Shown: positions 684-35,296 of the stretch, one piece after another
Numbering within the stretch: the stretch's first letter is position 1
Layout: every line of letters begins with the position of its first letter
Origin: Octopus bimaculoides
Taxonomy: Eukaryota
Direction: 5' to 3'
Assembly (NCBI RefSeq): GCF_001194135.2
Contig: NC_068986.1
Coordinates: 15,691,087-15,728,291, forward strand
DNA: 37,205 nt
Made by a program: the position numbers and the translations under genes
Notes under the pieces: model-generated
The model's database searches: none
Told to the model about the DNA's origin: nothing
What the model saw: the letters and a program-made list of their open reading frames with translations, nothing else

Positions 684-1658
684 TTATACTTTGTCATCTG
701 ACGATATATATATATTTTTAGAGGACCGTTCTTTCAACGTTAATGTGGCGCTCGTTTTCATTACTGCTTTTCGAAAACAAATGGTTTTGAAATTATCTCG
801 ATATACTTTACTTGTGATAATATAGCAAACGAAGTTCATACAGTTATTAAGCAGAGCCACAATATTCAAAAGAATTATGATGGGTAATTTATTATGATAC
901 ACTGGATGTGTGCTCGATAATACAAAACCACAGATGCATGCGGGAAATGTAGTTAGAAGAAACAGGAGATTAATAGATACCACAATGCGAATTGTATTTC
1001 TAGATCTCGTTGATAGATTGCGTTGAAACTGTTGACCGAGTTTCGGTCGTACAAGTATTTTATAAATTATACCAACAGAACTGGCAAATATAAAAATTCC
1101 TGGTAAGAATGAATATACAAAGATTGAAATGCGTAATCTGTATTTTCCATCCTTAAACAATATTGTAGTTAGTATGTGCGTTAGAGACACGCCAGTGAGA
1201 ATAAGCAACATTAATATATAAGGTTTGTATTTTTTCGAGGATTGAAACCGGAAAAACGGACAATACACTGCCAACATTCGTTCCATGGATATGGCTACAT
1301 TCAACCAAGAGGAGAACATATTTAGACAATATTTAATTCCTTCTACAACTGAATATCGATATAATATTCTGTCATCATTTAAAGCTTGAAAATTATACGT
1401 AAACGATATATATTTGGGGATATGTATCCAGATTATGGTTAAATCCACAAAAGCGAGGCAAATGAAATATGGAGTGAGCTTTGAGTGACGTAGTTCTTTC
1501 CTGCAAAAAGTTAGAATTACAGCTAAATTACAGAAAGTTCCTAATGTTAATAAAAACATAGAACTGTACCTTATAGTATTAATTATACCAGGATTTGAAT
1601 TGTTGACTATCAGAGTACTGTTGTGCATTATGTATTGGTTATTTCGACTTCGTTCCAT
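684..1658 (-). CDS. Intronless rhodopsin-like class A GPCR (GPCR1), 324 aa; orphan, FMRFamide/peptide-receptor-like or chemoreceptor-like lineage
   Basis: Uninterrupted ORF with 7 hydrophobic segments. Class A motifs: TM1 GTFCN, TM2 LAFVD, TM3 ISMERMLAVYCP (DRY equivalent), TM5 FLP, TM6 TTFP, TM7 NNCMNFVCY, helix 8 KVYR. N-terminal sequons NST and NNS. M11 (MHNSTL) aligns with the GPCR2 start and is an alternative start. Confidence 0.92.
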   Translation of the reverse strand: MERSRNNQYIMHNSTLIVNNSNPGIINTIRYSSMFLLTLGTFCNLAVILTFCRKELRHSKLTPYFICLAFVDLTIIWIHIPKYISFTYNFQALNDDRILYRYSVVEGIKYCLNMFSSWLNVAISMERMLAVYCPFFRFQSSKKYKPYILMLLILTGVSLTHILTTILFKDGKYRLRISIFVYSFLPGIFIFASSVGIIYKILVRPKLGQQFQRNLSTRSRNTIRIVVSINLLFLLTTFPACICGFVLSSTHPVYHNKLPIIILLNIVALLNNCMNFVCYIITSKVYRDNFKTICFRKAVMKTSATLTLKERSSKNIYISSDDKV

Positions 1659-2651
1659 TTAGGTAAATAATAACTCCTATGAAACTGTGCAATATTACAT
1701 GAAATGTTCAAATAAATAGATTTATAAGTTCATATCATGAGCCCTTGTAACTTTAGGTTTTTTCAGCAGAATTGCCGTATTTTCATATATTGTAGCAGAG
1801 AATGTTATTTATATGAATAATTCCCTGAGAAGGAGAGAACGTTTATAGAATTGAGAATGATGTTTGTAAAATCAAGATGTATTTGCTTTTGTGATATTCC
1901 TTTCCCAATCTCTCCGCTCACATGAATGTAACGTCGTTTTTGCTTTGTCCATGTGTGTGTGTTTGCTATAATAACTCAGTCAACATGAGTAATTTTGTTC
2001 ATCTGTCAGAAATGAGGACTGTTCTTTCCATATAACATTATATCTGCAGAGAATTTCAATTTCAATTCGTGACAATTCCCTGTATTTTATGTTCAGCTAA
2101 AGCGTTCGCTAGTATTAAAATCAACGCAATATTAAAAAAGAGATTTAATTCTTTAGTAAGCCAGTCCAGAAATATTTAATAAATAATCAATTTTATCATT
2201 TGTTTCTCAGAGATTTGCAAATGAAATTCCCCGTGATATGATTAAATCTATGGGTATTTTTAGGTAGCAACCGAACTGTAAAATCAGTTAACGTTTGGAA
2301 TAAGACTTTCGGCATTTTATATCATTGATGGCATAAGATTTGTTCTGTAGTTGCTTCATAAAATTGATGATGAAAATGTGTAAGAGGATAAGAAGTAGAA
2401 GAAATAGGATATTGTAGTTTGGTGAGCTGACATCGTTAGCGGCAAACAACTACATCAGCCACGACGGTGACATTGGCTAGAGGTATTGAGTTTTGGATTC
2501 AGTGGTAATAAGGATGTCGATTCTGATGATCATGATACTGATGTAGATGGTAATGAAAATATTTAATCACTTCGTTGATGTCAAATCATCCAACAATGGT
2601 TAGAAGCTACATACTGCGTCGCGAACTTTACTGTAACCCAATATTTAACAA

Positions 2652-2664
2652 GTACACACACACA

Positions 2665-2703
<39 letters not shown>

Positions 2704-2712
2704 ACATACATA
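2652..2712. repeat. (CA)n microsatellite
   Basis: Visible directly. Confidence 0.95.
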
Positions 2713-3090
2713 CACACGTACACTCACGCATATATATATACACGTATGTAGCCCCGTATATATATANNNNNNNNNNNNNNNNNCTCATACATATATATAT
2801 ATATACACATATGTAACCGTATACATACACACACATGCATACGTACATACATATACATATGTATACATACACTCACTCATACCTATATATATATATTCAG
2901 ACACACAAACACAATTACTTGTAGGCATGCATTCATGATGTACATTTGCAAAACAAACACATATTAAACCGGTTTCTAATCATTTACCACTAATTATCTT
3001 GACAAACTATGATCGATGCCGCTGTATACATAAGGTGTGGCTAAAATCATACTTCAACTAGCTCATGTAATAAAGGCAACCCATATGCGA

Positions 3091-3575
3091 TGGGTCATAC
3101 CATAAATAAGGTGGGGTTTTTAATTGCATGAACTAAAAGTCGCAGGTGGGTGGGATAAACTACCTGCATCAACTTTTTATTAAAGCTAATTGTAATTTTA
3201 CCTTGTGCAAGTTTTGAAGAATTTTGAAGAGCGCAGTTCGATTTTCTCAGTTCTTTTTTCAAAGCTATAATGTAAATGACAAAGGAGCGTGTTCGGTAGA
3301 TTGGGATTTATGAGTTCAATAAAGGCAAAAATGCAATGGAAAATGTGAGGAATTTTAATGCAGTATAAGGGGAACGGACAATAAGCAGAAGCCAGTGTCA
3401 GCAGTGGTTCCAGAAATTGCTAGCCGGAAACCATAGCCTACGAGTCGAGTGTCGTCCTGGAAGATCTGTAAAGATCGATGAGGACGTCCTGCAAATCCTG
3501 GTAGAATAAAATCCCATCGTAACTATTGACGACCTAATATATAAGCTTGGATTTGGTAATCCAACCATTCATTTT
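3091..3575 (+). mobile_element. Mariner transposase 5' relic (N-terminal HTH), with frameshift and stops
   Basis: From ~3312: EFNKGKNAMENVRNFNAV*GERTISRSQCQQWFQKLLAGNHSLRVECRPGRS...NPIVTIDDL, matching the Mos1-type HTH pattern (WFxKF, RxGRP, NP.T). No right TIR seen. Confidence 0.8.
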
Positions 3576-3928
3576 AGATGACAATTCCAGTTACCAAAAT
3601 GATGGTAATCCACAACGACGTTACGTCTGAATATATTCTGCAGCATCACTACAAACACAGCTTTCAAATTCTACATATAAGATCAGTCAATTTCTTGTTT
3701 CATGACAAATTCCATTCTTCATTTCAAGAACGAATGTTATCCGTAACAAAATAACACATGTAATAATTTTTTAGCTCACCCAGTATTTCCAGCACCTAAC
3801 GAGCTAATGAAATACAACATACGAAACACCAGCGCATAATGGGCAGAATATACAGAAAATCCATCAACTTTCAGGTGTATATTTGTACTTTCCGCCTTCA
3901 TCAATGGTAGAGCAATTAAAAGCTATAA

Positions 3929-4100
3929 GGTGGGGAGCTGTCAGAAACATTAGCACGCCGGACAAATTACTTAGCGGCATTTCGTTCGTCCTTACATTCT
4001 GAATTCAAAATCCACCGAGGTCTACTTTGTCTTTCATCCGCATCGATCAAATAAGTCACAGTTACGTAATGGAGATGATGTAATCGACTAGCCTCCTTTC
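3929..4100 (+). mobile_element. tRNA-derived SINE, family A (working label), decayed
   Basis: ggtggggagctgtcagaaacattagcacgccgg...ctgaattcaaaatccaccgaggtc...; A/B-box-like head; homologous to 10100 and 25265. Confidence 0.75.
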
Positions 4101-4980
4101 CATTTAATGTTTTAAAAGCTGCTACATGCCTATATTTTAAAATATAAAGCATCTCTGTCAGATAACCTGAGTTGTGACCAAACGGCGGAACCACCATTTC
4201 ATCTACAAAGCAGACTTTGTGAGGACCATTAATTACTTATGGAACAATTATGTGTATATGTGTCAGAAAGTTTGAACATTAAATGAGAAATGCTGGCAAC
4301 TGCTAAGCGAGATGTAAAACTTATAGAAGTTCTCTCAAGAAAACAGTAAATAGTAACATGTTAATATTGATCGGAGGAAATCACTAATTTGAAGGTACAA
4401 TAAATAACTATATATAAAGGAGAGACATTAAAGAGACTGGTATGATTACATGGAGATAAGAGTTGAAGTATGAGGGGAAGGGGGGATGTTGTAGTGTATA
4501 AATATAAGAAAATTGGATGTCATAAAAACCGGCCAAATATAGTGAGATTTCTACAAAATTGAACCAGAAGGAGTATATGTTAATAATAACCGCTACCAAA
4601 GTTAGATTACATAACCTAGACTGCTAATATTGTAAAATATAATATTGTTTTGTGTTCTTGGTTTCATAAGGTCGGAGAATGTTTCGGTGACTTATAATTG
4701 AGCGATATCTCAACAATGCCCCTAAACGTGACGCCAGTCCAATGAGTAACTCACGTACAGTTAAGTAGGCTAGAGCGACGTAACAAGAAATGTTTTTCCC
4801 AATGACACTACGCATTGCCCGGCGAGCGTAAGAGCAACACACTAAACACTTGACCTGGTGCTTCCACGGAGGGCAGGCACAGAAATAACATTCAAATACA
4901 GTGGAAATAAAAACAGATTAGAATTATTCAACTAAGTATTCTTTAAATAAAACCTAAACACATTGGAATAAAATTCTTCA

Positions 4981-5185
4981 TTTTTTTCTACTCTAGACAC
5001 AAGGTCCAAATTTTTGAGGGAGGTGGCCAGTCGATTAGACGGTCTCCAGTACGCACCTGGTAATCATTTTATAGACCACAAAAGGTAAAGTCGACCCCGG
5101 GGAATTTGAACTCAGAACGTAAAGACAGACGAAATACCGCTAAGAATTGTCGCCAATAGGGCTTACGTTTATGCCAGCTCACCCC
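4981..5185 (-). mobile_element. SINE family A
   Basis: aaagtcgaccccggggaatttgaactcagaacgtaaagacagacgaaataccgctaag is the reverse complement of the family A head. Confidence 0.8.
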
Positions 5186-5464
5186 ATTAATAAAAGGACT
5201 TATTAAGTAAACTAAAAATAACTTGGAATAAAAATAGTTGAGAATGGCCTATGCGTTTAGGTGAAATTTTAAAGAAACCACAAGACTTTTATTGCTTTCT
5301 TAGGGTATCTAATGTTATGGATTACACTGGGTAACACGATTCTTTAGTCCTAAGGTAGAAATTGTTATTTCCTATTTGCTTAATCCTAGAAAGTATGAAA
5401 AAGGGCTAATATCTCCTTCAAACTTTGCTTTTGTTATATCTATACAAACCCTACAGATTTATAT

Positions 5465-5620
5465 TATTTGCATTATTTACATTTGACAGATATTTGTCCT
5501 CATCTTGTTTGTTGTTAACACAGCGCTGCGGTTGATATACCCTCCAGCCTTCCTCAAGAGTCTTGGAGAAATTTCAAACCTGGTTTCTCATTCCTAAAGT
5601 ATTTTTCGATGTTATAATTA
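5465..5620 (-). mobile_element. SINE family C, 3' part (tail with decayed hammerhead-like motif)
   Basis: Reverse complement of 32170-32320 (catcgaaaaatacttaggaatgagaaaccagg...acaaacaagatgaggacaaata). Confidence 0.75.
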
Positions 5621-5745
5621 AAAAAAAAAAATAAAAAAAAAAAATAATAATAATAATAATAATAATGTATTCTTCTTCCCACTTGGATCTTAAATGTTGC
5701 CACAATTATAACATGTCCATTCTAATGTAATTTTCTACATTTCTG

Positions 5746-5833
5746 TGCAGCTGAAGATTGCTCTACATATTGCATTTAATGTAATGCTCGAATTACTTAA
5801 ATAAATGGAGTAGCATGAAATGTGTGTACTGCA
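5746..5833 (+). ncRNA. Minimal type-I hammerhead ribozyme motif (Penelope-like-element type), probably CpG-decayed
   Basis: tgcag-CTGAAGA-ttgct...agcat-GAAA-tgtgtg-TA-ctgca. Stem I tgcag/ctgca; stem II tgct/agca; core CUGANGA, GAAA and UH all present. Confidence 0.55.
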
Positions 5834-6212
5834 ATCAGCTTTAAAATCCGTGTTGCTTATATTGATTTTTTATATACATACATANNNNNNNNNNNNNNNN
5901 NNNNNNNNNNNNNNNNNNNNNNNNNNNNNNNNNNNNNNNNNNNNNNNNNNNNNNNNNNNNNNNNNNNNNNNNNNNNNNNNNNNNNNNNNNNNNNNNNNNN
6001 NNNNNNNNNNNNNNNNNNNNNNNNNNNNNNNNNNNNNNNNNNNNNNNNNNNNNNNNNNNNNNNNNNNNNNNNNNNNNNNNNNNNNNNNNNNNNNNNNNNN
6101 NNNNNNNNNNNNNNNNNNNNNNNNNNNNNNNNNNNNNNNNNNNNNNNNNNNNNNNNNNNNNNNNNNNNNNNNNNNNNNNNNNNNNNNNNNNNNNNNNNNN
6201 NNNNNNNNNNNN

Positions 6213-6480
6213 CTTTCACTGGTTTTAGTCATTATACTGCGGTCATTCTGGAGCAGCGCCTTCCAAATTATAGTTAAACGAATCGACACGCAGTACTATA
6301 TGTTTTTGACCTAGTACTTATCATATCGGTCTCTTTAACGAACTGCTATATTACTTGGACTTGAACACATCAACACCGGTTGTCAAGCGGTGTTAGGGAA
6401 CAAACACAAACAGAAAGATAGAGACGTCTGCATACATACACACATACAAAGACGAACTCACACACAAACAAGACTATTGA
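6213..6480 (-). mobile_element. SINE family B, 3' part, decayed
   Basis: ttagtcattatactgcggtcattctggagcagcgcc...ctagtacttatcatatcggtctc...acaccggttgtcaagcg. Confidence 0.6.
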
Positions 6481-6769
6481 AAAGGTTGCAAGACGCAACG
6501 AAAATTTTAGGAAAATAAAAATAAGAAATAAGTGGAAATTTTACCGGTGAGTGTGGTAAATTTTAAGGCGCAATAAGAAAATGACTCTCTCCAGACACAA
6601 CAGAATATGCTTCAACACACGAAATCACATAAAAAAAAAAACTTGCAAACCAAATCCAAATACGAAATACAGACAAATGAGTTACTTATATAAATGTATA
6701 TAAAGTAGATTGTACGTTAAACAAATAAATATGTACATAGGTAGAAATGATTGAAATAGAGGTACCTGA

Positions 6770-7693
6770 TTACGCTGTAGCATTAGGTCGGTTTGGCAAT
6801 GTGTATGATCTTTGCTGTATCCCTGTAGGCTTGCGAATACATACTTGCTTCAAATTTTCACGAAACACTTTGCGTGTAATAACATAACTTAAGAAATTCA
6901 CGCAGTTGTTAATGTAAGCCACGGCAGTTAGAATAAGGATGGTGCTTGATACGGTTTGGTGCATCGCATTATTGGGCATCAGGTAAATGATACAAATGGA
7001 TACTGGGAACGTTGTTAAAAGAAATATAGTATTTATAGCGATTACAAGACAAACAGTATTCCTAGTCCTTGCTGAAGCGTTCCGTTGAAACTGCTGGCCG
7101 AGATTTGGTCGTCGGAGTAGCTTATAAATCATAAGGATCGAACTGGTAATTAAGAAGGCCGCTGGTATGAATGCATATAAGATGACTGAATAGTATAAGA
7201 TAAGCCAATCATCTTTTAGCAATATATGAATTGAGATGTTTATTATGGAAACACAGATAAAAAGAAAGAACATTACCACGTATGGAGTGTACGGATTAGA
7301 GGATTGTAGGCGGGAAAATGGACTGTAAACTGCCATCAAGCGTTCCAAAGATATGACTACGATTAACAACGTAGAATACATATTTAAAGAATAAATTATT
7401 ACTTTAATGCTTCGATGCACCAAAAAGAATGCTCCAGTGGTCGGGTTTTCCATCATACCTGCATACCAAATAAATTGTGGGTAATTCATCCATACAACAG
7501 CTAAATCTACAATCGCTAGGCAAATGAGGTACGGGGCTATTTTGAACTGGCGCAGTTCTTTCCTGCAAAATATTCCAATTACTGCTACATTAAAGAATGT
7601 CCCAAGAGTCAATAATACTATGGAGCCGTACCTTATCGTACTAATGATAAATATATTAGTATTATTGACAATAACCTGGCTATCGTTGCTCAT
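6770..7693 (-). CDS. Intronless class A GPCR (GPCR2), 307 aa, MSNDSQ...PNATA
   Basis: ATG at 7693 just after an N gap (the track's 384-aa ORF reads through Ns); TAA at 6770-6772. Motifs GTFFN, LAIVD, ISLERLMAVYSP, FIP, TTFP, NNCVNFLSY. Shares RPxLGQQFQRN in ICL3 with GPCR1. Confidence 0.92.
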   Translation of the reverse strand: MSNDSQVIVNNTNIFIISTIRYGSIVLLTLGTFFNVAVIGIFCRKELRQFKIAPYLICLAIVDLAVVWMNYPQFIWYAGMMENPTTGAFFLVHRSIKVIIYSLNMYSTLLIVVISLERLMAVYSPFSRLQSSNPYTPYVVMFFLFICVSIINISIHILLKDDWLILYYSVILYAFIPAAFLITSSILMIYKLLRRPNLGQQFQRNASARTRNTVCLVIAINTIFLLTTFPVSICIIYLMPNNAMHQTVSSTILILTAVAYINNCVNFLSYVITRKVFRENLKQVCIRKPTGIQQRSYTLPNRPNATA

Positions 7694-8003
7694 GGTTAAT
7701 GGGTGCGACTNNNNNNNNNNNNNNNNNNNNNNNNNNNNNNNNNNNNNNNNNNNNNNNNNNNNNNNNNNNNNNNNNNNNNNNNNNNNNNNNNNNNNNNNNN
7801 NNNNNNNNNNNNNNNNNNNNNNNNNNNNNNNNNNNNNNNNNNNNNNNNNNNNNNNNNNNNNNNACCAGCAAAACATTACATTGCCAAGTACCTGTATACT
7901 TTCAGCCGTTGTGAATATACACATGTTGATGTATAAGACGTTAAATTCGTGGAATGTGGTGTTAATGTTTTATGTTTTAAACTCGTCAACGTCGTCGTCG
8001 ACT

Positions 8004-8276
8004 TTATCTCAGATCACAGCATTTAAATACTTCTTTGTTGAACGCTTGCTTTATGGCAATGATGTCATTGATGATTCTGTTGACCAATTCTTGCATAGAC
8101 GAATCGATGGCAGTGACAACAAGGCAATGTTGGTGACGAACGCGGTTGATTTCGTCGAGCTTTTTTCTGCTGTCGTTCGATTTCTTCCTCTTCTCTTCTG
8201 GCAACTCCGACGTATTTCTTTGCAATTGTGATGGAACGCTGCCAGTTCGTATCCTCTCGGGTTTGTGGGTCAACCT
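8004..8276 (-). other. 91-codon upstream frame / putative exon, copy 1, containing a 30-aa ATG ORF at 8004-8096
   Basis: Collinear without indels with 12023-12295 and 14571-14843. Preceded by AG and a pyrimidine tract on the minus strand. Confidence 0.45.
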
Positions 8277-8823
8277 CTAATGGGTTTTAAAGCTACGTGA
8301 GAGAAACATGGAGGTGTAGATATAATTAATATGAGGTAACTATATGTGTCTAATAATCCACATGTTTAAATGTTTCCTATTCTAAAATCGCATTGTAATG
8401 TTGAAAACGTAAAAACGATCTTCACTCTTACAGTAAGTGCATGATATTGACAAATGGAATTATCAACGATATTTGTGCGTGCGTGTGTATGTGTGTGTGT
8501 GTGAAGATATGAACGTATGCATAGGTGTCTATGTTAGAATATATGCAGAAGCATACGCATTTGTGCGTGTGTGTTATCTGAACGATCTATGTTTGTGTGC
8601 ATCCATTCAATACATTTGCAAGCGTAAATTTGCTCATGAAAGACGTGCTTATGTCCACGCTTGACTTAGCATTAACTATCCAGTATTCATATGTATCAAA
8701 GGTGTGGTTAAAACTTTCAAATTACACAAAAATATATTCTATACACATAGGCGTGTGTACGCGCGCACGTGCAAACACGAGGCCGCATATTCAGTATCCT
8801 ATCAACAAATATTGATAATTAGA

Positions 8824-9416
8824 GGCGCAGGAGTGGCTGTGTGGTAAGTAGTTTGCTTACCAACCATATGGTTCCGGATTCAGTCCCACTGCGTGGTATC
8901 TTAGGCAAGTGTCTTCTACTATAGTCTCGGGACGACCAAAGCCTTGTGAGTGGAGTTGGTAGACGGAAACTGAAAGTAACCCNNNNNNNNNNNNNNNNNN
9001 NNNNNNNNNNNNNNNNNNNNNNNNNNNNNNNNNNNNNNNNNNNNNNNNNNNNNNNNNNNNNNNNNNNNNNNNNNNNNNNNNNNNNNNNNNNNNNNNNNNN
9101 NNNNNNNNNNNNNNNNNNNNNNNNNNNNNNNNNNNNNNNNNNNNNNNNNNNNNNNNNNNNNNNNNNNNNTGTGTGTGTGTGTGTGTGTGTTTGTATATGT
9201 TTGTGTGTCTGTGTTTGTCCCACAACATCGCTTGACAACCGATGCTGTTGTGTTTACGTCACCGTAACTTCGTAGTGCGGCAAAAGAAACCGATAGAATA
9301 AGTGCTAGGCTTATAACGAATAAGTCCTAAGATCGATTTCTTCGATTAAAGTCGGTGCTCCAGCATGGCCGCAGTCAAATGACTGAAACAAGTAAAAGAC
9401 TAAAAGAGAAAAAGAG
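8824..9416 (+). mobile_element. SINE family B (tRNA head, CORE-like accttgggcaagtgtctt segment, internal (TG)n), full length, spans a gap
   Basis: ggcgcaggagtggctgtgtggtaag...gttcagtcccactgcgtgg...; tail gctccagcatggccgcagtcaaatgactgaaacaagtaaaag. Confidence 0.85.
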
Positions 9417-9435
9417 CGATTTTTATTCACGAATA

Positions 9436-9860
9436 GGCGCAGGTGTGGTTGTGTAGTAAGAAGCTACCTTCCCAATCACATGGTTCCAGGTTTAGCCCCA
9501 CTGACTGGCAAATTGAGTAAGTATAACTCAACTATAATATCGGGCCGACTGAATCTTTGAGTGGATTTCCAAGACGGAAACTGAAAGAAGCCCATTGTAT
9601 AATGTGTGTGTGTGTATGTGTGTGTGTGTGTGTGTGTGTATTTGTGTGCCTGTCTCTCTGTGTCTGCGTGTGCGTTCGTGTGTGTATTTGTGTTGGTCTG
9701 ATTACGTTTGCATGACGTAGCGATTCGGCAAAAGGGTCCGGTAGAATCAGAATTAGTGTTATAAAAAAATAAGTCTCGGTGTGTGATTTATTCGGCTGAA
9801 ACCCTTCACGACAGTCTCCCAGCAATGACCACAATCTAATAACTGAAACGTGTAAATGAT
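9436..9860 (+). mobile_element. SINE family B, old decayed copy
   Basis: Diverged head, (TG)n middle and tail. Orthologous to 15425-15576. Confidence 0.75.
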
Positions 9861-9911
9861 AATCGATTAAATATACAGAAATTTAGGTAATCCTTTCTGT
9901 TATATACAAAG

Positions 9912-10090: not shown

Positions 10091-10099
10091 ACACATACG

Positions 10100-10315: not shown

Positions 10316-10685
10316 GGGTCCATGTAATCGACACATCACTTCCCCCTAAACTGCTGCGCTTGTGGTAAAATTTGAAACCGTTATTATTATTATTACTATT
10401 ATTGTTATTATTATTATTAGTGCTGCTACGGCTTATGTTGTTGGTGTTAGTGGTCGTGTTGGTAAAGCCTGACTCTTATTTTATCTCGCATATCTGACCA
10501 ACCGGTAAGTTATAGAGACGTAAGCAGACTAACACCGGTCGTAGTGGAGAGCGAATGCCATCTCAAACAGGCGCATTCACTCATTTATACGCGCATTGAT
10601 TGAATCCAACAAACAGCCATAAGAAATCGCAGAAGAAATAACTTCGCAATTCGGAAGTATAAACTCAAACATTCAAATAAATTAG

Positions 10686-21240: not shown

Positions 21241-21490
21241 TGTAGACTGGTAAAAATGTTTTTATTTTTCATTCTCTTTCGAAATTATCCCTATTTTTGT
21301 GGTATAGAATTTTTTGCTACTCTTTCTAGCGGGTAGATGTCCTATNNNNNNNNNNTCTTTCGAAATTATCCCTATTTTTGTGGTATAGAATTTTTTGCTA
21401 CTCTTTCTAGCGGGTAGATGTCCTATTATAGGCATCTCTATATTTTAAATGTATATATATATATATATGTATGTATAGTACATAGTACAA

Positions 21491-21754: not shown

Positions 21755-22111
21755 TTACTGTATAGTAAGGACCTGGTCAAACATGGGGCTTCCTTCTTTC
21801 TGCTCTGCCATAGTAACCAAATTTGTGGAGATACCTGACATCAACTTCTCAGAGGTATTGCAACAAGGATTATCCTCCACACTTCTCTTAGCAAAGAGAA
21901 GGGTCTTGTCTGAGGACTCTGGTTCATCTGGACAAGGTGATGTGGACTCTTTCCTCTGTCTGGTGAATTGCACAATCACTCTGTTAACTGTAGAAAGCGA
22001 GATCCTAAGGTTTTCTTCGATTTTACGCTGACTATATCCACCTTCAAAATGACCCACAATACGGCCTCTTTGAATTTGAGACAGTTCCAAGACTTCTTTT
22101 GTACATGGCAT
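21755..22111 (-). mobile_element. Tc1-family transposase N-terminal (paired-like HTH) fragment
   Basis: [38 protein letters not shown] is a typical Tc1 HTH. Truncated before the DDE domain. Confidence 0.8.
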
Positions 22112-22239
22112 GATTAAACAGTGACGTGTAAAGTCTGAAACATAAAAAAAATCATTAATAATAAATATAAATCTTTACAAATTAGAATAAATAGAAAACG
22201 ATGTTTTATGGGGTGTCTATTTATTTATAACATGTGTGT

Positions 22240-23205: not shown

Positions 23206-23580
23206 TTACTTGTTTCAGTCGTTTGACTGCGGCCATGCTGGTGCACCACCTTTAGTCGAGCAAATCGACCCCGGGACTAGTTCATTGTAAGCCTAGTGTT
23301 TATTCTATCGGTCACGTTTGCCAAACAGGTAACTTACGGGGATGTAAACGCACCAGCATTACTTGTGAATGGGGGGGGGGAACACGGACACACAAACACA
23401 CACACACATATATTCAACGGTTTGTTCCAGTTTCCGTCTACCAAACCCACTCACAAATTTTGGTCGACGCGCGGCTATAGCAGAAGACACTTGCCCAAGG
23501 TGCTATGCAGTGGCACTGAACCCGGAACCCGGAAATATGTGGCTGGCAAGCATGCTACTTACACACACACACGCACGCAC
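23206..23580 (-). mobile_element. SINE family B, near full length
   Basis: tttacttgtttcagtcgtttgactgcggccatgctgg...agaagacacttgcccaaggtgc... Confidence 0.85.
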
Positions 23581-24122: not shown

Positions 24123-24184
<62 letters not shown>

Positions 24185-26498: not shown

Positions 26499-26839
26499 CT
26501 CTACGTAACTTTCATTCAAAGTTGGTTTGGTTCAGTTAATAATCCAGCACAAAAACAAAAACAAAAACAGAAAAACCTGAAATGGCACTAGAATATACCA
26601 GAAGAGTGCATTTTAGAAAATATTAAAATCCATGACATTCAGCAGATAGCACAATGTTTGTGACCACGATTGCAATTCACTTTAGACGGAGAAGTTTTGA
26701 GACATTTCGTTCTTATTTTTACATCTTATGAAATTAGTCATTGTTTTAGATATGCTAAAGAGAAAACCAACTTTCTCGAACTATCGCGGAATCCTGTACC
26801 CTTTACACTCATATTAATTATAAATAGTACTCTTTCTTT

Positions 26840-27292
26840 TTTACTCGTTTTACTTGTTTCAGTCGTCTGACTGCGGCCATGCTGGAGCACCGCTTTTAGT
26901 CGAGCAAATCGACACCGGGACTTAGTCTTTGTAAGACTAGTACTTATTATATTGGTCTAGTTTGCCGTACCGCTAAGTTACGGGGACGTAAACACACCAG
27001 CATCGGTTATCAAGCGATGGTGGGGGGTGGGGATAAACACAGACACACACATATACACACACACATACACGGCCACAGCTCATGAGCTGAAACTAGATAA
27101 ACTGAAAAATGAAATGAAATACATATATACAACAGGTTTCTTTCAGTTTCTGTCTACCAAATCCACTCACAAGGCGTTGGTCAGCCCGAGGCTATAGTAG
27201 AAGACACTTGTCCAAGGTGCCACGCAATGGGGCTGAATCCAGAACCATGTGGCTGGTAAGCAAGCTACTTACCACACATCCACTCCTTCGCC
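26840..27292 (-). mobile_element. SINE family B, full length, with a nested short + strand tail fragment at ~27070-27110
   Basis: Complete reverse-complement tail, middle and head. The nested cggccacagctcatgagctgaaactag matches 24784-24827 in reverse. Confidence 0.85.
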
Positions 27293-27862
27293 TATAGTAG
27301 CAAATATTTCTCAAACTTAACCCTGCATTGAAAATATTAGAATACTTTTTCTTTACGTACATATATGGTTGTGTAGTGTGCATGATATGAAAATAAAGCA
27401 GAACACAAAATGGGTTGGTAAAAAAAGATTTCTTGTTAGATGAACTCAACTAGAAATGGACTAGATATACATTAAATGAGAAACATGTCTAAATTGATAA
27501 AAACAACATATTGCATCAAATTATAATATATTTAACACACTTACAAAAAACAGTCATAGAGAGTTTCAGTATTCTCTGCCTGCGCACATTTTTAATTAAA
27601 ATGCAAATGTTTTTTTAACAAAGAGGACAGTTGCACTCTCCGTGTGATAAAAACATTGGAAAGTAGGTCGTTTGCTCTTAAAGTAAAACATTTCAATAGA
27701 AGTGCTAATTTCTTAATATGATATTTCGCCTACGGTTTCTAAATAATATGCCTTCGAGTAGGAAAGGCAAGCATGACTTACGAGTTTAGTTTCGGATTAT
27801 AATTCATAATTTATATTCCCTTATCAGGTTCCCAGATCAGATTGCTGATTACGAACTTGTTA

Positions 27863-27970
27863 CAGTAATCCCCCGATTATCGCGGGTGTTATGCTCTAAA
27901 ATGCTGCCCCACGATAGGTGAAAATCCGGGAAGTAGAAACAGCATTATATTGTATATTTTTTTAATCATT
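27863..27970. mobile_element. Partial copy of the same Tigger-like MITE, opposite orientation
   Basis: TA|cagtaatcccccgattatcgcggg. The internal ccccacgataggtgaaaatccgggaagtagaaacagca is the reverse complement of 30967-31005. Confidence 0.65.
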
Positions 27971-28379
27971 TTTATAATTTGTATATATTTATTTTATTAT
28001 AAATGTGATCACGATTATATTATATATTATGAAAACATGATAGTTTGTTATATAAAAAAAAGCATAAATACAATATAACATGAGTAAGTTTTATAAATTC
28101 ATATTTTTTATCTATTCCATCCATTAGTTATGTATTGCGTAACACTCAGAATATCTTAAACAGTTATTCGAAAATGATTAGCTATGCACACTCGCGCTAC
28201 ACAAATTGCATTTCACGTACTTTGATATTCCAAAGATGTCGACTCTTACTGTTGCACATTGCTGCACTTGGTACGATAGGCCATATGCTGTCTTCAATAG
28301 CTGACATGTTGTCGGCTGTGGTATTTTTATTCGCACGTGGGCAGATAACCGACAAGACGATGTTAGGTTACTTACGATA

Positions 28380-28672
28380 GGAGGCGCAATGGCTCCATGT
28401 TTAGAGCAGCGAACTGGCGGTCATAGGATCACAGTTTCGATTCCCAGACCGAGCGTTGTGAGTGTTTATTGAGTTTCTTCTTGTTTCTGTTGTACTTGTA
28501 TTTCAAAGGGCCAGCGTTGTCAAACTCTGTGTCACACTGAATCTCCCCAAGAACTACCATAAGGGTACAAGTGTGTGTGAAGTGCTCAGCCAATTGCACG
28601 TTAATTTCATGATCATGCTGTTTGGTTGATCGGATCAACTAGAACACTCGTTATCGTAACCGACGGATTGCC
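28380..28672 (+). mobile_element. tRNA-derived SINE, family D, internally deleted
   Basis: Head ggaggcgcaatggc...tttcgattcccagacc; tail ttgatcggatcaactagaacactcg...cgacggattgcc. Confidence 0.75.
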
Positions 28673-29056
28673 GCGATAAGTTTCTATCACCTGCGTGAGT
28701 AATAAAAGGCTATACATTCTTCGAGAGCAGCGATCTGTCGCGCTGAGATTGGTATATTCGGTTTATTAGCGGTCGATGCTTTTAAGTTCAGTTGCTGGGC
28801 GTACTTCTGTGTTCATATTTAAAGATTCTGAGTGGAGTAGGTGTATATATATATTACTAATGGAAGCATAATTAGAAATTATGTGGCGTTCTTTCGTCAG
28901 TCAAGTTACCAAATGTCCTTACAGTTTCGGGCGGTTACACTTCAGATTATTCGATCTGGTTGGTCCCAGGAAAGTCTACACTAAGAACATTAGAATTTTT
29001 GTAAGAAATCAAGCGAATGTTTATGACAACAAAGACAAAAAATCGGGAAAATTATA

Positions 29057-29201
29057 AATAATAAGGGTGGCTTGCGCGCAATTTTACAACCAAAAGGCAG
29101 AAATGTATACGTCACTAAAGTGATTGACAATAATAATCAGCACCGGTATCGATATGAATAAGATTAAAACAACAAATTCCTAACAAGCCACCCTTATTAT
29201 T
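29057..29201. mobile_element. Small MITE-like element with perfect 18-bp terminal inverted repeats
   Basis: aataataagggtggcttg (29057-29074) / caagccacccttattatt (29184-29201). Confidence 0.55.
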
Positions 29202-29540
29202 CACACCCACAAACACACATGCACGCACACAGATACACAAACACGCATATTTTCAATTAGAGGTTAACCTCATGAAAAGATGGTTTCAAGGAAATACTGG
29301 TTCAATACTAGGTATTTTGGGGGATTAATTCCCTTAAAATAATAGGTATATACATATAAAAACATAGCTTTCATTCATATAAAAGAAGAAAAATAAAATG
29401 AAGGTGGAAAGTTAATAATTGCTTATTATTAGTAGGAAATTAATCATCTTTCTTTACAGCTGTTTCAATTAATCTGTAGTAAATATTAAGTAAATATCTA
29501 ACTTATATGACGTGAGAATAACTTGAGAGAGACAAATATA

Positions 29541-29640
29541 CCCTTTCATCCTTTAGGGTAGATAAATTGAGTACCAGCTGCGCACTGGGGTCGATCAAAT
29601 CGACTGGTCTCCTCCCCCAAAACTTCGGGCCTTGTAAGCA
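29541..29640 (+). mobile_element. SINE family A, 3' fragment
   Basis: ctttcatcctttagggtagataaattgagtaccagctgcgcactggggtcgat. Confidence 0.75.
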
Positions 29641-29709
29641 GAACAGAACAGAATAATAATGGACTTAGTAACTTCCCAATCTGAATTTTCTTTTCCCGCT
29701 TATATATAC

Positions 29710-30064
29710 TCTTTGACTTGTCTCAGTCATTTCAGTGAGGCCATGCAGGAGCACCGCCTATAGACGAGCAAAAAGACACCGGGACTTATTCTTTTTAAGC
29801 CAAGTACTTATTCTATCGGTGTGTTTGGCAGAACCGCTAATTAATGAGGACGTACACACATACACAAGCATCGCTTCCGAAGCAATGTTGTGGGGGACAA
29901 ATACAGACACACAAAATACACACACACATAAACACACACAAACATATACACACACATATATATATATAGTAGAAGACACTTCACCAAGGTGCCACGCAGT
30001 GGGACTGAACCCGGAACCATTTGCTTGGTAAGCAAGCTGCTTAACACACACCTACTTCTGCGCC
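29710..30064 (-). mobile_element. SINE family B, internally deleted
   Basis: Tail at ~29710-29760; head agtagaagacacttcaccaaggtgccacgcagtgggactgaacccggaacc. Confidence 0.8.
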
Positions 30065-30089
30065 TCTCTCTCTATATATATATGTGTGT

Positions 30090-30275
30090 GAGTTTGTCTG
30101 TCTGTCTTGACTAAACTCCTCTTGACTAACTGCTGGTGGGTTTATTTTACTCGTAATTTTAGTGGCTCGGCAAAATAGACCGATAGATTAATTACCAAGC
30201 TTAAAACAAAACAAAAGAAATCAAGACGGTGCTCCGGCCTGACCACAGTTTAATGACTGAAACAAATATGGGAGT
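30090..30275 (+). mobile_element. SINE family B, 3' part, decayed
   Basis: ctcggcaaaatagaccgataga...gacggtgctccggcctgaccacagtttaatgactgaaacaa. Confidence 0.6.
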
Positions 30276-30694
30276 AAAGAACTTCATCAAATGAGGTAAA
30301 TATAGATGAGTGTACTTTAGATTACACAGAATAAAATGATTTCTCATCTATTTCTGGATGGAAATAATGCACCGAGTTTTACCATTCGTTTGTCAACAAG
30401 AATACGGAAATCTCAAATGAATGTATGCTCATATGATTTTATTGCCACCATTGTCTTAATTTTTGTAATCTAGTTCTTTATTACTTATTTTCACTGATGT
30501 GACATAAGCATAAAATTACCTTTGGGAAAAAGTAAATGAAGTTGTTTGCTCCTTCGCACACATATTCATGGTACATTTTCCGGCCGCTGAAGGATTAAAA
30601 GAGAACAGCTGAGGATTGAACTTGAAATGGTTGAATAGAATATAACATCAATCCATCGACTACTTTATGTATTGATTTGCAATTAACAGATATA

Positions 30695-31056
30695 CAGTAA
30701 TCCTTCACCATATCGTGGTTCACCTATCGCGGTTCACTTATCTCGGTTTATTATTTAACCTTACGTTGATTCCTTTGTGGTGTTGTCTTCCATTTATATT
30801 AAAATAAATATATACAGAGTAAAGATTGTTTACCAAAATAACATGGCAGACAATCTTTACTCTAGAGTACTATTGCTGAATGTCTCTCGTTGAGAGATTT
30901 ACAAATAGTAATTTTCTAAGTATATACAATTTATAATAATAATTTTAAAAAATGTATTCAGTACAGTGTTGTTTCTACTTCGGGGGTTTTCATCTATCGC
31001 GGGGGGGGGGGGGGGGTCTTTGGAAAGTCACACCCGTGGTAGCCGAGGGATTACAG
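30695..31056. mobile_element. Tigger/pogo-like MITE, ~360 bp, TA target duplications
   Basis: TA|cagtaatccttcaccatatcgtgg ... ccgtggtagccgagggattacag|TA (imperfect TIRs). Confidence 0.7.
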
Positions 31057-31804
31057 TACGAGTGTGCGAAAAATAGATATTTAGTTGCTTAAAATGAGTG
31101 GAATGTTCTTTTCATATCTCTGTTTCTCTTTTACGATGCCTATTTACCTATTTTTGTAGCATGAATATGTATGCGAAAGAGAAAACAACTTCATTTTCTT
31201 TTTCCTAAAGGTAATTTTTATAATTATGTCACATCAGTGAAAATAAGCAATAATAAACTAGATTAGAGAAATAAAGAAAAGGGGGCAACAAAATCGTTTG
31301 AGCATACATTTTTTTGAGATTTACGTATTTTGGAAACTCACACCCGCGGTAGCCGAGGGTTTAATAGATATTTAGTTGCTTAAAGTGAGTGGAATGTTCT
31401 TTTCATATCTCTGTTTCACTTTTACGAAACCTATTTACTTATTTTTGCCCCCCGCTGTATAATATTGATATCTATGTAATTTGAACTCATGACTGATGGT
31501 CTGAGCTAAGCATATATTGTCCAATGTTCCATTTACTTCATTCTTAATAGATTAAAATTGACATAAAAATTAGCTTACCTGCTTCTCAAACACACCTGTC
31601 CAAATGATTAATAGTTCTCTTCTTTTTACGGCACCACTCAGCCAATTATATGATGAAAATATCTCCACGTTTAAACTCCGTTTCATTCCGTTTTCCCTTC
31701 GAACTGTGGGTCTGTTATTTAGTTTCCGTGGCTTATAATTGATCGAAATCACAAGGTCTACTTTGGGTGGTACGACAGCTTGATGCGGAACAGGTTTCAA
31801 CCCC

Positions 31805-31983
31805 AGCAATTTCGAGAGAAGGGAGCCACTCGGTTACATAGCACTTGACAAGTACAATATTTTCTCAACCTCCGAAGAGATGAAAGACAAATCTGATCAT
31901 GGTGAAATTTGAACTCAGAACGTTAAGAGCCAGAAGTATAGTCACTAAGAATTTTGTGAGACTAACGATTCTACCAGTAATCC
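31805..31983 (-). mobile_element. SINE family A, decayed
   Basis: gatgaaagacaaa...gaaatttgaactcagaacgttaagagc...ctaacgattctaccag. Confidence 0.6.
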
Positions 31984-32084
31984 ATAGATTATTTTCCAGA
32001 AGACATTAACATATAGGAACCGGTATTATGGAAGGATAGGAAAATGTTAGATTTATAAGCCCTAAAATTCACTTCATAATTGCC

Positions 32085-32327
32085 CACGGTCATGTGGCGT
32101 AGTGGTTAAGAGGGCGGGTTACTAATATCAAAATTCCGAGTTCGATTCCATTTAGTGACCTGAATAATATTAATAATAACATCGAAAAATACCTTAGGAA
32201 TGAGAAACCAGGTTCGGCATTTCCCCAGGACACGTGAAGATGGCTCCAGAGTATGTCAGCCGAAAGGTTGTGTTAAAAACAAACAAGACAAGGATAAATA
32301 TACGTCAAATGCAAATTAAAAAAAAAA
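32085..32327 (+). mobile_element. SINE family C, full length (tRNA head, hammerhead-like tail, A-rich end)
   Basis: A box tggcgtagtgg (32095), B box gagttcgattcc (32138), tail homologous to 5465-5620, poly-A at ~32318. Confidence 0.85.
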
Positions 32328-32379
32328 GATCAACATAATTTCTTCTAATATCTTTCATCGGCATTTTATCCATAATCAT

Positions 32380-32797
32380 AACTGGTTTGAAATTTGGGGG
32401 AAAGACCCGCCCTTTTGGGAGACAGGGTACGCCGATTCCATCGACCTGCATTACTCAACTGGCATTCATTTTATAGTCCACAAAGGACGGAGAGAAAGTT
32501 CGACCTTGGTTAAATTGGACGGACGAAAGGATTCAAAGAATTGTGTGCCTCCTCGCTCCACGTCTGTAACAATTCATCCAGCTCGCTGATTACATGTTTA
32601 TAAATATTTTAGCAGTTTTTATGCGAGGCCAACAATTTTGGGTGGAGATGTAAATCGATTACATCGACCGCATTACTTACTTTTATCGGCTCCGATAGGA
32701 TGACAGAAGGTGACATTTGAACTCACAACTTAAAGACTGAAGAAAAACTGCTAAGCCTTTCGCTCGGCTTTCTAACGTTACTGCAATCTCATACCAC
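32380..32797 (-). mobile_element. Two decayed SINE family A copies (32380-32590, 32620-32797)
   Basis: Residual gattacatcgacc, atttgaactca and ccagctcgc motifs. Confidence 0.55.
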
Positions 32798-32951
32798 TTT
32801 AAGGTGTTCTAATTATTACTGCCAAAGTATACGCATTTGAAAACTGTGAAATGGGTGATTCACGACATGAAGGTGTTTTTCAGCTGTTGTTGTCATTTTA
32901 TGCTTATTTTCACTAATCAAACTGGCTCTTCGTTATCTCTGACCAAATATT

Positions 32952-33117
32952 CTTTTCTACTCTAGACACAAGGCAGACATTTTGGATGAGGGGGCCAGTC
33001 GATTAGATCGACCCCAGTAAGCAACTGGTACTTAATTTATCGACCTCGAAAGTATAAAAGGCAAAGTCGACCTCGGCGGAATTTGAACTCAGAATGTAAA
33101 GACAGACGAAATACCAA
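32952..33117 (-). mobile_element. SINE family A, truncated at gaaatacc where the LINE tail begins
   Basis: Young-looking copy (gtcgattagatcgaccccagtaagcaactggtacttaatttatcgacc...); the 5' part of the head is missing. Confidence 0.85.
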
Positions 33118-33123
33118 ATTCTT

Positions 33124-34020
33124 TATTGCCCATACAGAAATGTACAAAACAACTGATTGGGATCAGTAATGCGATATGGTTTTACGTAAAATGTGATTTT
33201 AAAAATTAAATAAAATATAAAAAATCGAATCATATTAACAATACAGAGACAATACAAATGAAGTGATGATCGGGCCACGCTCCTACCCCACAAGCCCAGA
33301 TCTATCGCTGGTATATTTTTTGTTTGTTTTATTCCGTCCATTCACACGGTTTCTTGCACGCACACAGTTCCTTGCACGCACAACATTCCTGCAACATGCT
33401 TCCATCTCTTTTGGAATGTACACTCCGACAGACATCTCTTCTCCAGCCACACTTTCGTTTTCAAATGAAAAGTAAAAAATGAACGTAAATTGTGGCCAGA
33501 GATAAAGTTGCCTGACTTAATTACTGTTATCCTAGTCTTCCATACTGCCTCTTTCGCTACAACCGTGAGAAAACAATTCTTACCTTCGTTTGTTAAAACT
33601 CCCGGTGGGTCAATTTTTATAATTGACTCAGTCGACAGCTGTACTCTTCATTCGCCGGACAACAGGTGTTCAGCATAAGCCCACATTTCAGATATCTCCG
33701 GACACTGAACAATAGCATGAGGGACGGTCTCCCTGTCTCCTCCGCATCTTTGACAGGTCGGCGACTGACGCTTACCGTGTCCTGCGAGCTTATCCCCGAC
33801 GGGCAAGGCACCTCTGTACCATTGCCAGGTTAATGACTTTTGGAATTTGTTCAACGTTCTCAACCCGAATGTACAGTGAAACAGGCTGTCCAGTTGAATA
33901 AACCCGAGACCTAGAGTCTCCCGCAGGCCATCGTCGCATTTAGACTCTACTAACCCACTATATAAAATCCGTGTGGAACCCCAGCGCTGGCGTTGCCCGA
34001 GCGCCGGAATAGCAAGAGGG
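33124..34020 (-). mobile_element. Tx1/L1-clade LINE 3' fragment with zf-RVT (CCHC) C-terminus and 3' UTR
   Basis: About 220 codons with one in-frame TGA: ...KSLTWQWYRGALPVGDKL...PTCQRCGGDRETVPHAIVQCPEISEMW...GE*RVQL...AKEAVWKTR...KRW. AATAAA on the minus strand at ~33122-33127. Confidence 0.85.
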
Positions 34021-34429
34021 CCTTACATTTCGACCTTTAAATGACATGTAGTACCGCATATGTATATGTTTTAAGTTGTGTGTGATATAGTGAGGTTTTG
34101 TTTCTTTAAATCTTCTAACAATATATGTTGTCTTTCAGACTAAATCGCTGATGATCAAAATTGTGTTTCTCTGTCAGTTTCTTTTTTTCTTCTTTGCATT
34201 TAGTACCCGAGTTATTTAAATGGACAACCCATCTCGTACGTCAAAAAAAAAAAAAGAAACATAATTGTTATCGTCAATTACAAATCCATATTTTAACATT
34301 TTTTTTGCAGTATATCTTCCATAAAGCAGCTTTTGGTTTACTTTGTTAATCCCATAAGTCCATGTGGTTCATTTAAAGATAATTCATTGTTTTGATATTT
34401 AATACGACCGGAAATTCGTTGCTAAAACT

Positions 34430-35296
34430 TCATTTCTGTTTAGAAAACATTTTCTTTGTTTTGTCTCTGAATTGCTTACTAATGCACACATATACAAGGA
34501 AATTTAAACTGTTGTTTAGGCATGCGACAAAATCTGCAATTAGAAAGGATATCTGAGTTCGAGTATACTCGTCTACGTTCGCAATAATCGCAACAGGAAC
34601 CGTTGTGAATATAAATATCGCATTTATACTAATGACAAGACATATAGTATCCTTTGATTGTGTATTGTGTTGGTTATTTTGGCCGAGATTTGGTCTATGA
34701 ATTAATTTGTATGACATAAGGATGTTGCTGATAACTAAAAGTGTTGCTGGTATAAAGGAGTATAAGATGGTTAGAAACAAAACTATTAGGTTTTGCGGGA
34801 CAATTTTGCTGAATACTACTCCTATGCTAATTGCTAATATTGAAACAAATGCAATGGATCCCGCAATAATAAACCTTTGAGTTGATCCGTTCAGAATTAG
34901 AAATGGACAATAAACTGCCAACATGCGTTCAGCTGATATTATTACCGTTAACCATGAAGACATTTCGTTTGAAATTATAATAATCAGGGTTAGCAAATAA
35001 AAAACACTTTCTGAGTATTGAAATCCGTAAGTATCTAATATAATTTTCAGTGCATTCACCCATAAAGTAATGGTATCCACAATCGCTAGTGAAATAAGAC
35101 GAGAAGCAATTCTATATTCTTTCATAGCTGTCGAACACGCCACTGTTATTATAAGGAGGTTGCCCAGAGTCCCCAAAATCAGCACTGAAATGGAGCTAAA
35201 ACGAAGAGCATTATATATTCCAGTGTTATTCATTATTATAATAGAATATATTCTCACAATTTCTCCAAATTCCTTTATATTCGATGGAAGATACAT
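34430..35296 (-). CDS. Intronless class A GPCR (GPCR4), 288 aa, divergent paralogue; alternative start at MNNTG
   Basis: GTLGN, LAIVD, ISAERMLAVYCP, YSFIP, HRPNLGQ, TTVP, NNSLNFLVY, SKQFR: the same family signature as GPCR1-3. Confidence 0.9.
   Translation of the reverse strand: MYLPSNIKEFGEIVRIYSIIIMNNTGIYNALRFSSISVLILGTLGNLLIITVACSTAMKEYRIASRLISLAIVDTITLWVNALKIILDTYGFQYSESVFYLLTLIIIISNEMSSWLTVIISAERMLAVYCPFLILNGSTQRFIIAGSIAFVSILAISIGVVFSKIVPQNLIVLFLTILYSFIPATLLVISNILMSYKLIHRPNLGQNNQHNTQSKDTICLVISINAIFIFTTVPVAIIANVDEYTRTQISFLIADFVACLNNSLNFLVYVCISKQFRDKTKKMFSKQK

Follow-up and report, generated by a model that had tools for sequence, protein, structure and literature searches.

Cephalopod-specific expansions of G-protein-coupled receptors (GPCRs) of class A, comprising 63 and 21 genes, form tandem clusters, carry signs of positive selection and are expressed largely outside the brain, in testes, gills, nervous tissue and other organs (Ritschard et al. 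2019, PMC6408891). Class A expansions that are lineage-specific have also been catalogued in 19 cephalopod genomes (Nath et al. 2025, PMC11886862). In lophotrochozoan expansions, including those of cephalopods, the usual disulfide between transmembrane helix 3 (TM3) and extracellular loop 2 (ECL2) is absent and ECL2 is long, at 25-30 residues (PMC11886862). Herein we describe a stretch of 37,205 nucleotides from Octopus bimaculoides (contig NC_068986.1, positions 15,691,087 to 15,728,291), referred to below in its entirety as the window, which is probably best explained overall as carrying a tandem cluster of four genes from a small, octopus-restricted class A GPCR subfamily.

Several other described systems are relevant to this locus. 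The Aplysia candidate chemoreceptors (AcCRs) are encoded by clustered and mostly intron-free genes (Cummins et al. 2009, PMC2700072). The profile model for the Srw family scores on 29 AcCRs, which cluster apart from the true srw genes, and Srw is the sole nematode chemoreceptor family that is clearly related to the peptide-type rhodopsin receptors (Krishnan et al., PMC3963977). The melanocortin receptor MC4R has a four-residue second extracellular loop without Cys, lacks the bridge to TM3 and presents a 'wide-opened extracellular vestibule' to large peptides (PMC8563958).

The window is AT-rich (36% G+C), abounds in microsatellites and short interspersed repeats, and is interrupted by 11 runs of N. 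Four co-oriented open reading frames (ORFs) on the minus strand encode paralogous class A GPCRs, and their coding parts are without introns. These genes (G1 to G4), the duplicated segments around two of them and the assembly gaps that adjoin coding sequence are as follows.

684-1658, minus strand: G1, a complete class A GPCR gene for a protein of 324 amino acids, recognised by its ORF and a 7tm_1 match.
6770-7693, minus strand: G2, a complete seven-transmembrane receptor gene, 307 amino acids from the Met of MSNDSQ.
10686-11421, minus strand: G3, of which 244 codons are read and the 5' third is hidden by a gap.
34430-35296, minus strand: G4, 288 amino acids, the most divergent paralogue.
6675-8976: tandem duplication unit 1, G2 and the region upstream of it (self-blastn).
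10679-13015: tandem duplication unit 2, G3 and the region upstream of it (self-blastn), with a repeat period of about 4.0 kb.
14399-15573: a third, older and partial copy of the 1.2-kb upstream segment, at 76-80% identity (self-blastn).
7711-7863: assembly gap that starts 17 nt upstream of the G2 ATG.
11422-11798: assembly gap (377 N) that covers the start codon and 5' third of G3.

A preliminary description of this DNA, made from the letters alone, had proposed four intron-free paralogues on one strand, and the ORFs (324, 307 and 288 amino acids where complete) and Pfam matches bear this out. Relative to gathering thresholds of 30.5 bits for 7tm_1 and 22.2 bits for Srw (PF10324), 7tm_1 is exceeded by G1, G2 and G3 (33.1, 47.8 and 32.3 bits) and Srw by G2, G3 and G4 (37.2, 29.0 and 32.9 bits). 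The Srw matches cover half-length stretches only, corresponding to TM1-4 or TM5-7, and the Pfam search gave no Srw match for G1. G4 matches Srw and Srsx and not 7tm_1, and the precomputed annotation of its relatives P0009 and P0013 includes PF00001. On the strength of these profile scores, we consider that the family assignment cannot be a product of chance. AlphaFold2 models of G1 (predicted local distance difference test, or pLDDT, 78.5; predicted template modelling score, or pTM, 0.76) and of G4 (pLDDT 87.4; pTM 0.83) both consist of seven helices followed by helix 8, with TM4 of G4 at residues 140-161 and TM5 at 168-200. More than 1000 PDB GPCR chains were matched at E <= 0.001 in a fold search. 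Human GPR139 was both the best PDB profile match (E 2.7e-23) and the best fold match (7vug_R), at an identity of about 19-20%.

The extracellular side of these receptors departs most conspicuously from the class A pattern. When position 3.25 is located by counting 25 residues back from R3.50 (within ERM or ERL), the residue is Tyr in G1, His in G2 and Phe in G4, and in none of them Cys. ECL2 is reduced to 3 non-helical residues in the G1 model (the KDG region) and to 6 in the G4 model (SKIVPQ), in both cases without Cys, and the three complete window proteins contain no extracellular Cys at all. The C3.25-ECL2 disulfide that marks class A receptors is lacking in the window receptors, whose N-termini do carry N-glycosylation sequons. 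Residue counts and structure models thereby uphold the earlier claims that position 3.25 is not Cys and that TM4 and TM5 are joined by a Cys-free linker of a few residues. A hidden exon that would supply a longer ECL2 was considered and rejected, in that TM4, ECL2 and TM5 lie in one unbroken ORF and the same spacing recurs in all 13 full-length members of the subfamily, from at least two species.

The motif changes listed in the preliminary description are likewise all visible in the window sequences: TM4 is without Trp (no W4.50), TM6 reads TTFP or TTVP, TM7 reads NFxxY, and the third intracellular loop (ICL3) contains RP(K/N)LGQ. W4.50, CWxP and NPxxY are common but non-obligatory features of class A receptors. 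To separate inherited from subfamily-specific traits, we rely on an exhaustive HMMER search of 1.84 billion representative proteins with G2 as the query, from which the family picture is drawn because a word-index protein search gave only 1, 7 and 2 hits for G1, for alignment A2 and for G4, respectively. This search returned 505 matches at E <= 0.001 and only 15 at E <= 1e-30, and, when clustered at 50% identity, the family amounts to approximately 15 representatives. We aligned its 117 closest full-length relatives, of which 107 fall outside the tight core; the core itself comprises 13 full-length members, those of the window included.

Much of what first distinguishes the window receptors is common among the 107 non-core relatives. 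N-F occupies positions 7.49-7.50 in 103 of them, position 6.48 is Thr in 82 and Trp in 0, Tyr is found at 5.58 in 0, and more than half have a TM4 without Trp. We therefore regard NFxxY, the absence of W6.48 and the frequent loss of W4.50, as far as aligned sequences can tell, as inherited from a wider GPR139/Srw-like clade, a large invertebrate group whose molluscan members bear the automatic label 'GPR139-like' and which scores with Srw in Pfam. The core differs in the spacing from R3.50 to P5.50, which is 58-61 residues in 13 of 13 members versus 63-127 (mostly 75-87) in the other relatives. All 13 lack Cys both at 3.25 and between TM4 and TM5, whereas nearly all non-core sequences keep both residues, and RPx[LIV]G occurs in the ICL3 of 10 of 13 core members versus 6 of 107 others. 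The HMMER search and alignment revealed no relative with the short-ECL2 architecture outside the tight core. From this comparison, the traits that appear specific to the subfamily are the loss of both cysteines, the deletion of roughly 10-25 residues of ECL2 and the RPxLGQ motif. Of the motifs earlier thought to be peculiar to the family, RPxLGQ keeps that status, but NFxxY and the losses of W6.48 and W4.50 are shared with relatives. The missing disulfide itself is confirmed in the window receptors, but such an absence has already been published for expansions of this kind (PMC11886862).

In a neighbour-joining tree the core is monophyletic, with a bootstrap value of 100% over 200 replicates. 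Closest to it are P0018 and P0020, which keep both cysteines, followed by P0017, P0033, P0036 and P0040, and most of the near-core neighbours combine both cysteines with a shortish ECL2. Because the core nests among relatives that keep their cysteines, the absence of lid and bridge is a derived state within a disulfide-bearing lineage. Elsewhere in the wider NFxxY clade, ECL2 is shortened in P0029, P0092, P0114 and P0033, which have also lost one or both of C3.25 and the ECL2 Cys. In the tree P0029 stands apart from the core, and the losses shown by P0029, P0092 and P0114 fall in other places and look independent. A further variation is seen in P0003, P0004, P0006, P0008 and P0015, none of which is encoded in the window. 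These proteins have an N-terminal N-C-(S/T) together with a Cys in extracellular loop 3 (ECL3), which suggests that one branch of the family has a putative MC4R-like disulfide between the N-terminus and ECL3; the window genes have neither residue.

The taxonomic range of the subfamily can be narrowed from its database entries. Core member P0014 corresponds to UniRef A0A0L8II40, a 'G-protein coupled receptors family 1 profile domain-containing protein, Tax=Octopus'. Four further members have UniParc numbers in the same batch as that of P0014, and the remainder of the core derives from assemblies of sequencing runs. The proposal of a lineage-restricted family is thus sustained by its size of about 15 clusters, its full bootstrap support and a member named Octopus. 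P0001 is 70% identical to G1, P0002 70% to G2 and P0009 67% to G4, and the tree recovers the pairs G1 with P0001, G2 with P0002 and G4 with P0009 at 99-100%, the second of these at 100% bootstrap.

P0001 and P0009 both come from run SRR11869391, in which contigs L001 and L002 represent the G1 and G4 loci, respectively. L001 is collinear with the G1 locus at 79% over 1332 nt, including 0.4 kb of upstream non-coding sequence, and L002 is collinear with the G4 locus including 1.7 kb of upstream non-coding sequence, the non-coding flanks of both being 75-77% identical to those of the window. The contigs are therefore genomic and, since collinearity runs through coding and non-coding sequence alike, the P0001 and P0009 loci are orthologous to those of G1 and G4 in a related species. 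Together with L003 (the three contigs being from runs SRR11869391 and SRR11869384), they represent a second related species that has G1 and G4 orthologues as well as a G4-like paralogue. It follows from the pairing of G1 and G4 with their orthologues that the paralogues are older than the split from the second species. The sole recent duplication is that of G2 and G3, which are separated by a synonymous divergence (dS) of 0.038, and turnover has therefore been modest. Accordingly, the case for the birth-and-death mode of evolution once suggested for this family is weak, given the collinear G1 and G4 orthologues in the second species, the pairing of G2 with P0002 and only one recent duplication.

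The rate at which these proteins change was estimated by the Nei-Gojobori method as omega, the ratio of nonsynonymous to synonymous divergence, with values of 0.41 for G1/P0001, 0.62 for G4/P0009, 0.26 for G1/G2 and 0.79 for G2/G3. Coding identity, at 81%, is barely above that of the alignable flanks (75-77%), and full ORFs are kept in the two species at approximately 19% nucleotide divergence. Column entropy differs strongly between the two halves of the helices, at 2.02 bits for the outer versus 1.31 bits for the inner halves (p = 1e-9). Conservation is much stronger in the cytoplasmic helix halves, ICL3 and helix 8 than in the outer halves. Invariant or nearly invariant positions in the family alignments are N1.50, D2.50, S3.39, R3.50, P5.50, P6.50, N7.49 and Y7.53.

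With 11 runs of N in the window, the gene ends warrant some care. None of the receptor ORFs spans a gap: the sequence is uninterrupted in G1, in G4 and, from its Met, in G2, and the gaps that do not adjoin a receptor gene are intergenic. G1 has an in-frame stop immediately 5' of its ATG and G4 has one 8 codons 5' of its ATG, and from comparison with its orthologue P0009 the start of G4 may be Met22. The G2 frame stays open as far as the gap edge at 7710, only 17 nt upstream of the ATG, and its exact start is therefore probable but unproven. A longer 'ORF' of 384 amino acids at 6770-7924 was rejected as an artefact in which N's are translated. The gap at 11422-11798 costs G3 about 93 N-terminal codons (279 nt), and at its other end a change of the stop codon from TAA to AAA adds 31 codons. 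G3 may be drifting.

Self-blastn aligns 6675-7414 with 10679-11420 at 95% and 7864-8976 with 11889-13015 at 90%. Between the two duplication units the offset is 4004-4006 nt on the lower side of the gaps and 4025-4039 nt on the upper side. Because these offsets are similar on both sides, the gap lengths recorded in the assembly are roughly right, and the G3 gap can therefore contain the missing 279 nt. We judge from these alignments that G3 is a recent tandem duplicate of G2. Both copies adjoin assembly gaps, and at least one gap-edge artefact is present in the window, which invites the competing view that G2 and G3 are one locus assembled twice, through uncollapsed haplotypes or a scaffolding error, in a cluster of only three genes. 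The artefact in question is a pair of segments of 71 nt each (21275-21345 and 21356-21426) that are 100% identical across a 10-N gap and most likely represent unmerged overlapping contig ends. G2 and G3, unlike that pair, diverge by 5% over the coding sequence and by 10% in the region upstream, and also differ by indels and the stop-codon change, while the third, older copy at 76-80% identity indicates that the segment has been duplicated repeatedly. Haplotype duplication is therefore an unlikely source of the G2/G3 pair, and we would be surprised if the cluster proved to hold only three genes.

With these gene models in hand, we propose the following sequence of events for the octopus subfamily. 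Ancestors that possessed the TM3-ECL2 disulfide gave rise to receptors that lost some 10-25 residues of ECL2 and both cysteines together. The receptors are presumed to be functional in view of a conserved G-protein side, which includes N1.50, D2.50, S3.39, E/R3.49-3.50, P5.50, P6.50, N7.45, N7.49, Y7.53, helix 8 and RPxLGQ. Function is also what we infer from ORFs that are intact in two species and from omega values of 0.41, 0.62 and 0.26. The outer helix halves, by contrast with this conserved side, would diversify fast. The extracellular face is free of disulfides and consists only of a short glycosylated N-terminus, extracellular loop 1 (ECL1), an ECL2 of 3-6 residues and a short ECL3. By analogy with the melanocortin receptors, a ligand would probably enter a wide vestibule with no cap over it, bounded only by the tops of the helices, ECL1, ECL3 and the N-terminus, and a heterotrimeric G protein would then relay the signal. 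Ligands that themselves change quickly would be favoured by the speed of protein evolution, the restricted taxonomic range and the tandem duplication, and candidates would include chemical cues from outside the animal or secreted peptides that evolve rapidly, in preference to a neuropeptide conserved across bilaterians.

Several considerations weigh against this proposal. That the pocket is open is judged by the length of the loop, and the N-terminus or ECL1 and ECL3 could partly cap it. The family is small (about 15 clusters) and G1 and G4 have one-to-one orthologues, which makes it look less like a classical chemoreceptor repertoire. The omega values of 0.6-0.8 for G4 and for G2/G3, and the loss of the G3 stop codon, are compatible with relaxed constraint as well. 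Moreover, without W6.48 and Y5.58 the way in which these receptors would be activated is uncertain. GPR139 does signal despite having no Y5.58. As for the idea that the pocket is unusually open, the disappearance of C3.25, the ECL2 Cys and nearly all of ECL2 speaks in its favour, but a lid-less precedent exists in MC4R and the feature is less unusual than it first appeared.

What these receptors might sense is a separate matter. A chemosensory role is possible, although we give it rather less than even credence. The genes are tandem, co-oriented and intron-free, as expected for a chemoreceptor repertoire, and their raised rate of protein evolution is focused on the ligand side, as judged by omega and helix-half entropy. 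A more specific version of this idea is quite doubtful. It holds that an octopus clade converged on the melanocortin-type architecture, such that bulky, sticky or poorly soluble external molecules could reach the helix bundle, and that the products serve as contact or distance chemoreceptors in the suckers, lips, skin or olfactory organ. Such convergent chemoreceptors would act beside the chemotactile receptors derived from nicotinic receptors.

Alternatively, the subfamily might respond to endogenous octopus peptides or metabolites in internal tissues such as the nervous system, testis or gill, the open vestibule then being an adaptation to a bulky peptide rather than to chemosensation. We consider such an internal-signal role somewhat unlikely, though by no means negligible, and what remains of our expectation goes to undetermined roles or to decay. 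A small family is in keeping with an endogenous ligand, as are the one-to-one collinear orthologues that a second species has for G1 and G4 and the tree pair formed by G2 and P0002. The closest solved relatives (GPR139, NTSR1, GHSR, SSTR and GALR2) are peptide or orphan receptors, and MC4R is an instance of a class A pocket that has no lid and serves peptide hormones. In cephalopods, in addition, the class A expansions are expressed largely in testes, gills and mixed tissues (Ritschard et al., PMC6408891). However, omega values of 0.4-0.6 between orthologues are high for a conserved hormone receptor, and a coding identity hardly above that of the flanks (81% against 75-77%) points the same way. 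The strong diversification of the outer helix halves, and an ECL2 architecture found in no relative beyond the tight core, also fit poorly with an endogenous ligand. That the loss of the disulfide and lid simply reflects a loss of function, with these genes being young pseudogenes or under relaxed selection, is very improbable. This view could draw on the G2/G3 omega of 0.79 and lost G3 stop, on the value of 0.62 for G4/P0009, and on the missing canonical microswitches (W6.48, P7.50, Y5.58 and W4.50). Yet omega is below 1 in all comparisons, and full ORFs without frameshift or stop are found in two species at approximately 19% nucleotide divergence and in at least 13 full-length members. The missing microswitches are common to hundreds of relatives, including the functional human GPR139, and the positions listed above as invariant or nearly so, from N1.50 through Y7.53, have not decayed.

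Apart from the receptors, the window's other genes amount only to transposon debris. A tblastn search with the three complete proteins (E <= 10) found no fifth receptor copy or relic in the window, and specifically none in the 17-34 kb stretch or in the flank of the third upstream-segment copy. This third copy (14399-15573) is either left over from a third duplicate that has been lost, or a segment that is mobile. No tRNA genes were found in the window by ARAGORN. Approximately 400 nt downstream of G4, an ORF fragment (33651-34022, minus strand) matches zf-RVT, the Pfam reverse transcriptase zinc-binding region, at E 1.3e-08 and is the remnant of a non-LTR (long terminal repeat) retrotransposon. 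An ORF of 139 amino acids (21758-22174, minus strand) has weak, below-threshold helix-turn-helix matches, including that of the Sleeping Beauty transposase (E 2e-3), and may be a Tc1/mariner relic. From 17459 to 18194, about 700 nt of low-complexity, triplet-like repeats create poly-Ile/Thr/Ser, poly-Asp and poly-His ORFs in several frames, and this stretch is not a gene. Finally, a dispersed repeat of about 150-240 nt that resembles a short interspersed nuclear element (SINE) occurs in both orientations at 75-90% identity, with the copies given below and others.

8807-8981: SINE-like repeat copy.
12843-13036: SINE-like repeat copy.
15430-15577: SINE-like repeat copy.
16877-17090: SINE-like repeat copy.
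23388-23529: SINE-like repeat copy.
27119-27312: SINE-like repeat copy.
29965-30065: SINE-like repeat copy.

Both the kind of gene family present here and the missing disulfide are already known, and the subfamily is best viewed as a real but modest variation on the receptor gene expansions described in cephalopods. The literature we examined does not describe the nearly complete loss of ECL2 in a single octopus subfamily, the polarity of that loss in the tree or the RPxLGQ motif. Octopus chemosensation is attributed mainly to chemotactile receptors derived from nicotinic receptors, and the role of GPCRs is an open question. The subfamily offers a compact candidate set in this regard, with about 15 sequence clusters of intron-free genes that are easily cloned. 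Because relatives that keep their cysteines adjoin the subfamily in the tree, the loss of the ECL2 lid and disulfide can be dated. The subfamily would thus serve as a natural experiment on a lid-less class A pocket, and as a second, independent case beside the melanocortin receptors. Should its members turn out to be orphan receptors of an ordinary sort that act in internal tissues, only an annotated subfamily will have been added to the described expansions.

How the locus compares with these described systems can now be stated. In common with the mostly single-exon genes of lophotrochozoan expansions, its genes are intron-free, co-oriented in tandem, lineage-restricted and fast-evolving, and encode Srw-scoring proteins with a short N-terminus bearing N-glycosylation sites. 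The window receptors differ from the expansions of Nath et al. in having an ECL2 of 3-6 rather than 25-30 residues, and from cephalopod expansions more generally in that the family is small and that, for two of the window genes, a second octopus species has one-to-one orthologues. The AcCR signature (W/F)ITAF(I/V)TFERCLCIA is absent, and the window proteins instead read SSWLxVxIS(M/L/A)ER(M/L)(L/M)AVY, with ERM or ERL followed by AVY(C/S)PF. The core's sister sequences P0018 and P0020, with ER..C.C, come nearer to that signature. The likeness to the Srw family is confined to the partial, above-threshold matches of G2, G3 and G4, and does not extend to G1.

With human GPR139, the window receptors share NFxxY in TM7, a Tyr-Lys pair 13-14 residues past P5.50 in place of Y5.58, and the lack of Cys at 3.25, which is Asp in GPR139 by our own count on the profile alignment. 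GPR139, unlike the window receptors, has Trp at 6.48 and an ECL2 of normal length in that alignment. A Haliotis 'probable G-protein coupled receptor 139' is the closest named outgroup in the protein library, NCBI names of this kind being automatic. Melanocortin receptors are found neither in the best 60 profile matches nor in the top 50 fold matches. The window proteins also differ from them in having Tyr, His or Phe at 3.25 rather than the Ca2+-binding Asp, and in having no extracellular Cys. Membership in the melanocortin family was rejected for want of a specific sequence relationship. The two groups nevertheless share a short, Cys-free ECL2 and the absence of a TM3-ECL2 disulfide, and the spacing from R3.50 to position 5.50 is about 57 residues in MC4R (by our own numbering) versus 58-61 in the octopus core, a resemblance that we ascribe to convergence.

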